From NCBI RefSeq assembly GCF_035594765.1, contig NC_085845.1, forward strand, positions 95,350,024 to 95,414,023: a DNA stretch of 64,000 nt, written 5' to 3'. The notes under the pieces are model-generated. The model ran no database searches, had not been told where the DNA came from, and saw only the letters and a program-made list of their open reading frames with translations. The position numbers and the translations under genes are program-made. This document shows, one piece after another, positions 9,059 through 9,455 of this stretch (position 1 is its first letter; each line of letters opens with the position of its first letter). Source of the stretch: Anolis carolinensis (Eukaryota).

Positions 9059-9129
9059 GTCAGTATGATAAGGCATCAGATCTTTCTTTGAAATGTAGTA
9101 ATGGTGTTGCTCCTCTCATTTCGGGATGA
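9059..9129 (+). CDS. PCLO: Intron-encoded alternative C-terminus (Piccolino-type retained intron)
   Basis: In-frame read-through [26 protein letters not shown], 23 aa, in a short 397-nt intron. Resembles the mouse Piccolino tail as recalled. Confidence 0.75.
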
Positions 9130-9269
9130 ATTATTTTTATTTTCTATTTTTTCTTTCCCCAATTTTGTTTAAACATTCTGTTGGACTATGTGACAAACTG
9201 TGCTGGGATGTACACGTGTATTTTTTGTTTCTTCATTTTTACATCAATTATTTTGCACAAAGAGGTACC

Positions 9270-9355
9270 TGCATGTGCCTGCATGTTCAGAAAAATGTGT
9301 TTTCCCCTTCCCTCTGCATTACTAAAGTAAATAATTAAATATGAAGATTTGCATG
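9270..9355 (+). promoter_or_regulatory. Three TGCATG (RBFOX-type) splicing elements in the short intron
   Basis: TGCATG at 9270, 9280 and 9350. Confidence 0.55.
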
Positions 9356-9455
9356 CAGCTCATCCTGGTCTCTACTCATTATGGGATGGCTTTCAGAATC
9401 CATCAAAAGACTTTGTTTTGGGGAACTGGACTATAACTCTGCCCTGTAATTTCAG

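Follow-up and report, generated by a model that had tools for sequence, protein, structure and literature searches.

The short intron that is located at positions 9059-9455 of the DNA that we have analysed (a stretch of 64,000 nucleotides, referred to as “the window”) raises two questions: whether it is the lizard counterpart of the mouse Pclo intron 5/6, a 356-bp intron whose unspliced product is Piccolino (PMC3735604, Regus-Leidig et al. 2013), and whether the short tail that it adds to the protein is maintained for the sake of the peptide. Piccolino acts in photoreceptors and hair cells, where it gives synaptic ribbons their shape and tethers vesicles, and it has been defined so far only in rodents; the comparison of Regus-Leidig et al. 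was limited to mouse, rat, cow and human, and its authors have considered that the tail may serve no purpose other than truncation, a verdict that rested on the difference between mouse and cow (PMC3735604). In the zebrafish literature, the term “Piccolo/Piccolino” is in use with the isoform left undefined, and we have found no report of a retained-intron tail outside mammals in the literature that we searched.

The PCLO locus and its exon map

The protein search has located the middle part of the PCLO (Piccolo) gene on the + strand of the window. The top protein matches are the Piccolo proteins of Podarcis (90% over the covered part), Phrynocephalus and Gekko, of many birds and of one turtle; the source animal is accordingly a squamate. 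The exon map has been obtained by placing the spliced Piccolo proteins of lizard, turtle, bird and platypus on the window (tblastn); the exons were treated individually by reference to these proteins. The features of the locus are listed in Table 1, together with the tails from other lineages that are discussed below.

Table 1. Features of the PCLO locus in the window and read-through tails from other lineages
Feature	Position or locus	Strand	Sequence or length	Basis
PCLO exon	ends near 166	+		spliced Piccolo protein mapping
Read-through open reading frame	3925..9129	+	finishes ...GKVTT, 23-residue tail, TGA	
Giant PCLO exon, mouse exon 5 equivalent	4009..9058	+	5050 nt	ORF; tblastn of platypus, turtle and lizard Piccolo
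Read-through tail of the window lizard; first codon G/GT straddles the exon-intron border	9058..9126	+	23 codons, 23 residues	translation, homology
Retained intron, mouse intron 5/6 equivalent, phase 1	9059..9455	+	397 nt	tetrapod alignment, RNA contigs
Weak 5' splice site	9059..9064	+	GTCAGT, C at +3	DNA read at PCLO loci
In-frame stop	9127..9129	+	TGA	position conserved from teleosts to mammals; codon TGA or TAA
Three TGCATG elements (9270-9275, 9280-9285, 9350-9355)	9270..9355	+	TGCATG	tetrapod alignment
Intron 3' end: branch-point-like element (9431-9437), pyrimidine tract, AG acceptor	9422..9455	+	CTATAAC (branch-point-like)	alignment
Next large exon, mouse exon 6 equivalent	9456..11461	+		protein mapping, RNA contigs
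PCLO exon after intron 6/7	21262-23469	+		protein mapping
Further PCLO exons	35194-35337, 51873-51956, 59747-59878	+		protein mapping
Second squamate tail	L001		23 residues	
Bird (Hydrobates tethys) tail	L002		GQYDTAADLSLKYNFDVPHLISG	
Turtle/crocodile-like tail	L003		GQYDTAADLSLKYNYGVPHLISG	
Amphibian-like tail	L004		GQYDVPANLSLKCDYGVPHLISG	
Mormyrid-like fish tail	L005		GQYEGIADLSLKYHFDLPPLIPG	
Otophysan tail	L006		22 codons	
Four acanthomorph tails	L007-L010		e.g. GQWSDIADLSLKCHYELPPLIHG	

The orthologue mapping has thus placed the intron in PCLO and between two giant exons, i.e. at the position that the Piccolino intron occupies in mouse (5/6), and the residues that flank the splice site agree with the spliced models, with GEIVDYS on the downstream side. 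The other PCLO introns in the window measure 3.8, 9.8, 11.7, 16.5 and 7.8 kb, and the map that has been made from spliced proteins therefore confirms what an earlier, sequence-only reading of the window had pointed out, i.e. a 397-nt intron among introns of 3.8-16.5 kb. The protein region that is encoded by the giant exon is disordered, and the Pfam search of the giant exon has matched no family.

The read-through tail and its mouse counterpart

The exon ends with ..ACAG at position 9058, and the acceptor reads ..TTTCAG/GTGAAATT at positions 9455/9456; the C at position +3 of the donor is a rare, non-consensus base. Both the sub-optimal donor and the in-frame read-through that the sequence-only reading had described are therefore real, with a tail of 23 residues before the TGA, and the mouse tail that it had given is letter-perfect when compared with the published Pclo-49 immunogen, GQYDVAIDPALNCHYGVMHLVSG (PMC3735604). 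The lizard and the mouse tails have equal length and an equal stop position, and they are identical at 13 of the 23 residues; the lizard locus combines, in this way, an early in-frame stop with a unique 23-residue tail that is homologous to the Pclo-49 epitope. The same length, the same stop and an identity of roughly one half had been claimed before the comparison, and all three hold, but this figure understates the conservation of the tail, the mouse being an outlier.

In mouse, the retained-intron product has been seen at ribbons by means of a tail antibody (PMC3735604, PMC13394108), and in a paper of 2026 (J Cell Biol) the tail epitope is found directly on the ribbon, with the N-terminus located about 30 nm away (PMC13394108).

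Conservation of the tail among bony vertebrates

We have searched for further tails with a protein query that consists of the C-terminal 255 residues encoded by the read-through ORF; many ORFs of public contigs that have their end in the intron were obtained, and further searches have been added. The tally comprises 85 protein clusters whose ends lie no more than 40 residues from the end of this exon. The tail has 23 residues in 62 of the clusters, 22 in 14 and 20 in two (78 of the 85 in total), while one further cluster carries an 11-residue copy that is shortened by an early stop; every change of length is in frame, by whole codons. The consensus of all of the tail-bearing clusters is GQ[YWC]..[IVA][AT]DLS[LQ][KR][CY].[FY].[LVM]..LI.[GSI], and the tail with the conserved stop occurs in about 60 acanthomorph clusters. 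The tally includes the mammal-like fragments P0121-P0123 and P0152/P0161, some of them possibly human, for which only the tails were read and the contigs were left out. One of these fragments, P0161 (66 aa), reads GQYDVVVDFFLKYYYGVFYFILG; the pattern of its changes (A>V, S>F, P>F/L and H>Y) resembles the C-to-T conversion of a library treated with bisulfite, and the fragment is an artefact of the protein collection rather than a variant.

The DNA has been read for eleven PCLO/pcloa lineages, where the labels of the unnamed contigs are inferred from the named proteins that they match best. As possible transcripts, we have also considered the Logan contigs L001 and L003-L010, but they carry further intron sequence according to the spliced protein mapping and are genomic. 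The stop position is kept in all of the PCLO/pcloa lineages sampled, sauropsids included, and the mouse tail aligns with the others, whereas the read-throughs of the second teleost paralogue, pclob, vary between 9 and 25 residues; the match between lizard and mouse is therefore more than chance. An annotated Etheostoma protein (P0113) terminates in the tail, and in gar, the gene model P0126 continues into the intron with GQYDKATDLSLKYEY...

The fragments from non-rodent mammals read GQYDVAADLSLKYHYGVPHLISG and differ from the bird and turtle tails at two to three of the 23 positions; the rodent-like fragments read GQYDIAIDPALKCHYGIVHLVSG. Judged by these tails, it is the rodents, and to a lesser degree the squamates, that are the divergent lineages. 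A search that was seeded with the exon end of the whale shark has yielded no ORF of a cartilaginous fish that extends into the intron, and a short-fragment protein search with a query of 150 residues has returned four proteins and left the sampling of sauropsids unchanged. The distribution of the tail supports an origin in the common ancestor of bony vertebrates or earlier; the claim that Piccolino predates the split between mammals and reptiles is supported, and the root is deeper than claimed, the tail and its stop being shared with the amphibian-like and the teleost copies.

The teleost paralogue pclob

Fish sequences contain a second protein group, with ..AIDLT..K in place of ..AVDLT..K before the end of the exon; as its named members are the carp “piccolo b” and the Denticeps “pclob isoform X7”, this group is pclob. 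The read-throughs of pclob are unrelated to the tail, e.g. GQYYSVCVY and GEYGVIPAFLQV. In the pclob locus for which the DNA has been read (L011), the GTCAGT donor is nevertheless present, and the intron, about 335 nt long, contains a GCATG cluster. As far as these sequences go, the regulatory architecture has survived in both teleost paralogues and the 23-residue peptide only in pcloa. A paralogue that has the splice signals but lacks the peptide argues against the view that, elsewhere, the peptide is conserved only as a by-product of those signals.

Splice signals and conserved intronic elements

The donor AG/GTCAGT is identical in all 11 of the PCLO/pcloa loci examined, as well as in the pclob locus. 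The intron aligns end to end with the bird, the turtle/crocodile-like and the amphibian-like copies, which means that the lizard intron has no lineage-specific insertion, and the whole of it is alignable among these four at a mean column identity of 78%. Near the 3' end, the tetrapod copies share an invariant TGGACT.TAACT block, and the last 40 nt are at an identity of 0.83. The three TGCATG elements are unchanged in each of the five copies from tetrapods (those of the lizard, of the second squamate and of the bird, and the turtle/crocodile-like and amphibian-like ones), and clusters of GCATG recur in the fish introns of both pcloa and pclob; the triplet is a candidate set of splicing-regulator sites, and a candidate retention switch of the RBFOX type.

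At window position 9187, the assembly has a T, while A is found in all four of the sequencing runs (from four studies) that are described below and in the aligned tetrapod copies, which makes the T either a private allele or an error in the assembly.

Selection on the tail: peptide or RNA

The constraint on the tail is most clearly delimited in fish. Among the four acanthomorphs, the mean pairwise identity is 0.82 over the last 150 nt of the exon, 0.79 over the tail and 1.00 at the stop codon, and beyond the stop it amounts to 0.51, 0.33 and 0.47 in the next three intron stretches, which are gapped, and to 0.75 in the last 40 nt. The differences in the tail are distributed over the three codon positions as 26/11/48, those in the same frame after the stop as 56/60/51; the dN of the tail is 0.09-0.22, and its dS is at least 0.9 in five of the six pairs. 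When five non-overlapping species pairs, from squamates to acanthomorphs, are summed, pN is 0.16 versus a pS of 0.55 (Fisher p = 7e-10), where the two acanthomorph pairs among the five may have a small part of their path in common. Synonymous changes (GAT/GAC, CTT/CTG/CTC, TCT/TCA/TCG and TTG/CTG/CTT) have left the DLSLK core intact, and the lineages use either TGA or TAA as the stop at one and the same position. These substitution patterns show purifying selection on the tail peptide, and the dN/dS-type comparison that had been proposed for this intron has thus detected constraint on the peptide both in acanthomorphs and in the five independent pairs.

In tetrapods, the tail is 0.82 identical and ungapped, and the intron downstream of it is 0.56-0.67 identical and gapped; the differences in the tail are nearly flat over the codon positions (45/32/47), its dS is 0.34-0.65 versus 0.8-2.4 in the exon, and the dN/dS of the whole tail among tetrapods alone gives an omega of 0.24-0.77, with dS being depressed. 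The conservation of the whole intron and the depressed dS of the tail indicate that constraint at the level of the RNA overlaps the coding constraint there. Within amniotes alone, the coding and the regulatory constraint are inseparable in these alignments, and the clean coding signature comes from the fish and from the summed independent pairs; the claim of coding constraint is supported by these, while the amniote sequences by themselves do not separate the two.

The tetrapod pattern is what would be expected if the conserved 69 nt were an RNA regulatory element, i.e. a splicing silencer or enhancer or a hairpin of the donor, with the peptide being incidental and the stop merely truncating. 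Along with the invariant blocks of the intron, the 78% identity, the flat codon pattern and the depressed dS, this explanation would account for a helix of 7 bp that RNAalifold predicts between the donor AGGUCAGU and GCxGAYCU, the codons for A-D-L of the tail (window 9056-9085), all 7 bp of which are kept in 11 of 11 sequences, and it would agree with the view of the 2013 authors (PMC3735604). The helix, however, amounts to only -3.6 kcal/mol and has no compensatory change. Moreover, the conservation in fish stops exactly at the stop codon, with the changes in the tail concentrated at third positions; pN is far below pS over the independent pairs; DLSLK is preserved through synonymous codons, with all indels being multiples of three; and pclob lacks the tail sequence although its donor, its short intron and its GCATG cluster have been kept. 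We consider a purely regulatory role of the 69 nt improbable for these reasons, and selection on the encoded peptide is the reading that we retain.

Lizard transcripts with the retained intron

Assembled contigs from four runs of the window's species, from four studies, have been placed on positions 7000-12900 of the window; the sequencing-run listing has 20 entries from six studies of one organism, and the RNA nature of the runs, which was a guess, is confirmed here only by a splice junction. Each of the four runs has a contig whose alignment stops precisely at 11461, the next 30 letters being equal to window 21262-21291; the 11461/21262 junction across the 9.8-kb intron 6/7 means that the runs contain cDNA. 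The run X3 has a 6414-nt contig (depth 55) and the run X16 a 4213-nt contig (depth 231), both of which cover the stretch from about 7250 to 11461, intron 5/6 included, without a break; the contigs of the run X13 span the donor (8665-9236) and the acceptor (9290-10046). In X3 and X13, the depth is zero in the unique parts of intron 6/7. Transcripts that retain intron 5/6 with intron 6/7 removed are thus found in X3, X16 and X13. The contigs of the fourth run, X10, break at both intron borders and include a GT..AG joint, 9055>9453 (depth 6.3); the intron piece has a depth of 5.2 versus 27-38 for the exons, no higher than the background of the same run in intron 6/7 (1-5). No spliced 5/6 branch is assembled among the contigs of X3 or X16. 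Both isoforms exist in lizard, and their balance differs between samples, where the contigs show presence and not proportions.

A stop that is located far upstream of later exon junctions normally invites nonsense-mediated decay, and the intron-containing RNAs might accordingly be nuclear “detained-intron” or incompletely processed RNAs that tune the output of Piccolo, instead of translated Piccolino mRNA; the evidence from lizard consists of assembled contigs, and in X10 the intron is at background level only. X3 and X16, however, carry the intron and both exons in one contig, with the neighbouring intron cleanly removed, purifying selection on a peptide would be senseless in an untranslated RNA, and in mouse the tail antibody detects the product at ribbons (PMC3735604, PMC13394108); we regard a detained or incompletely processed RNA as highly improbable, and a translated, Piccolino-type mRNA as the better reading of the lizard contigs.

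Two further observations concern the same contigs. The retained-intron contig of X3 extends about 2206 nt into the exon 21262-23469 and ends 2-3 nt from its donor (23469), which fits a branch point at 23469 and may bear on a read-through of exon 7. In intron 6/7, an interspersed repeat at 11925-12318 has a very high summed depth in the RNA-like runs, up to about 96,000 in X16; it is an expressed or multi-copy element.

The tail and the PXDLS-like array

The last ~310 codons of the ORF 3925-9126 (window 8641-9126) contain an array of PXDLS-like motifs, xx[DN]L[ST], the members of which are CVDLS, IINLS, PINLS, VVDLS, PVDLT and AVDLT. The spacing is alike in all lineages, and from teleosts to squamates it is nearly identical, at about -310, -282, -205, -160, -127, -32 and -16 residues from the C-terminal end. 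The x-x-D-L-S-x-K of the tail is always located 16 residues past the conserved AVDLT motif; the tail can be regarded, on account of this position, as the continuation of the array, and it may be the terminal docking unit. A canonical PXDLS (Pro at position 1, followed by x-D-L-S/T) has not been found in the tail of lizard (ASDLS), bird (AADLS) or fish (IADLS), and Pro occurs at position 1 only in the amphibian-like copies (PANLS); the tail is in this respect PXDLS-like and not canonical, as are several of the other Piccolino motifs. A list of Piccolino PXDLS-like motifs is reportedly given by Mueller et al. 2019. According to the literature, other Piccolino motifs of the PXDLS type bind the B domain of RIBEYE and bundle its filaments, and a passage of a 2026 preprint speaks of “seven motifs” in Piccolino.

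Tentatively, and with more doubt than confidence, we propose that the tail, instead of being a by-product of truncation, is a functional module whose age equals or exceeds that of the bony vertebrates and the core of which, [AI][AST]DLS[LQ][KR][CY], would act as a terminal PXDLS-like unit that docks the C-terminus in the lattice of RIBEYE B domains (16 residues after AVDLT and 16 from the C-terminus), and that the rodents have lost the core secondarily, a loss that would have led the field to dismiss the tail. The tail is not essential for every function, because mouse Piccolino works without the DLS core.

Proposed mechanism and significance

Window 9059-9455 is the squamate orthologue of the mammalian Pclo intron 5/6, the retention of which probably yields a truncated protein of the Piccolino type. 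When the intron is spliced out, the mRNA would encode full-length Piccolo; when it is retained, translation would cover 23 codons of the intron as far as the TGA, the exon 9456..11461 would remain untranslated, and the product would be a protein of the Piccolino type, truncated at its C-terminus, from which all that exon 6 and the later exons encode is missing, the PDZ and C2 domains among it. The ratio of Piccolo to Piccolino is probably set by the weak donor together with the intronic GCATG/TGCATG cluster; a hairpin that sequesters the donor, being too weak and without covariation, is rejected as the main explanation and stays a minor rival. By analogy with mouse, the retained transcript would be translated and its product located at synaptic ribbons; for lizard, the sequence-only reading predicts the ribbons of retina, of hair cells and possibly of the parietal eye or pineal. 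The tail itself may have a separate role there, for which the final position in the PXDLS-like, RIBEYE-binding array is the most plausible candidate.

Four results go beyond prior knowledge: how deep the conservation reaches, that the peptide is under selection, that pclob differs from pcloa in this respect, and that the rodents are outliers; taken together, these contradict the published view of a tail without function. Across bony vertebrates, the tail and its stop form one conserved package with the weak donor and with the GCATG cluster inside the intron, and the rodents are the divergent exception. Lizard, chicken, Xenopus and zebrafish are therefore systems where the function of the tail (e.g. 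docking to RIBEYE), the splicing switch between Piccolo and Piccolino, and the division of labour between pcloa and pclob are testable, and the consensus peptide could be used for a pan-vertebrate antibody that is specific for Piccolino.

Comparison with known systems

The closest known system is the Piccolino of mouse and rat, which shares with the lizard form the host gene PCLO, an intron that is located between two giant exons and is short (356 versus 397 nt), 23 codons to a TGA, a homologous tail, and the coexistence of retained-intron and spliced transcripts. The lizard has the ancestral DLSLK core, while the rodents have lost it (DPALN in mouse); the use of an alternative weak acceptor, in addition, is a feature of mouse Pclo. 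The hallmarks of mammalian Piccolino are a truncated protein of about 330-350 kDa and its occurrence in ribbon-synapse cells (photoreceptors, bipolar cells and hair cells); protein, tissue and ribbon localisation are known only from mammals, whereas the lizard form is known here from DNA and transcripts.

The truncated forms of teleost pclob (Denticeps clupeoides pclob isoform X7, P0143, and the Logan ORFs P0145 and P0150) resemble the lizard form in their exon/intron position, in the short intron and in the truncation by read-through, but their tails are unrelated to those of lizard and pcloa in sequence and in length, the 23-residue peptide not having been maintained in pclob after the teleost genome duplication. 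With the PXDLS motifs that bind CtBP as well as RIBEYE's B domain (of the adenovirus E1A type, and PVDLT in Piccolino), the core of the tail shares the D-L-S-x-K part; position 1 of the tail is mostly A or I and not P, the rodents lack the core, and binding by the tail is a prediction. Full-length Piccolo/Aczonin, lastly, shares with the retained form all of the sequence up to ...GKVTT, including PVDLT and the PXDLS-like motifs that bind RIBEYE; compared with it, the retained form lacks what exon 6 and the following exons encode, i.e. the coiled-coil regions, the PDZ domain and the C2A/C2B domains, and gains 23 residues that are unique to it.
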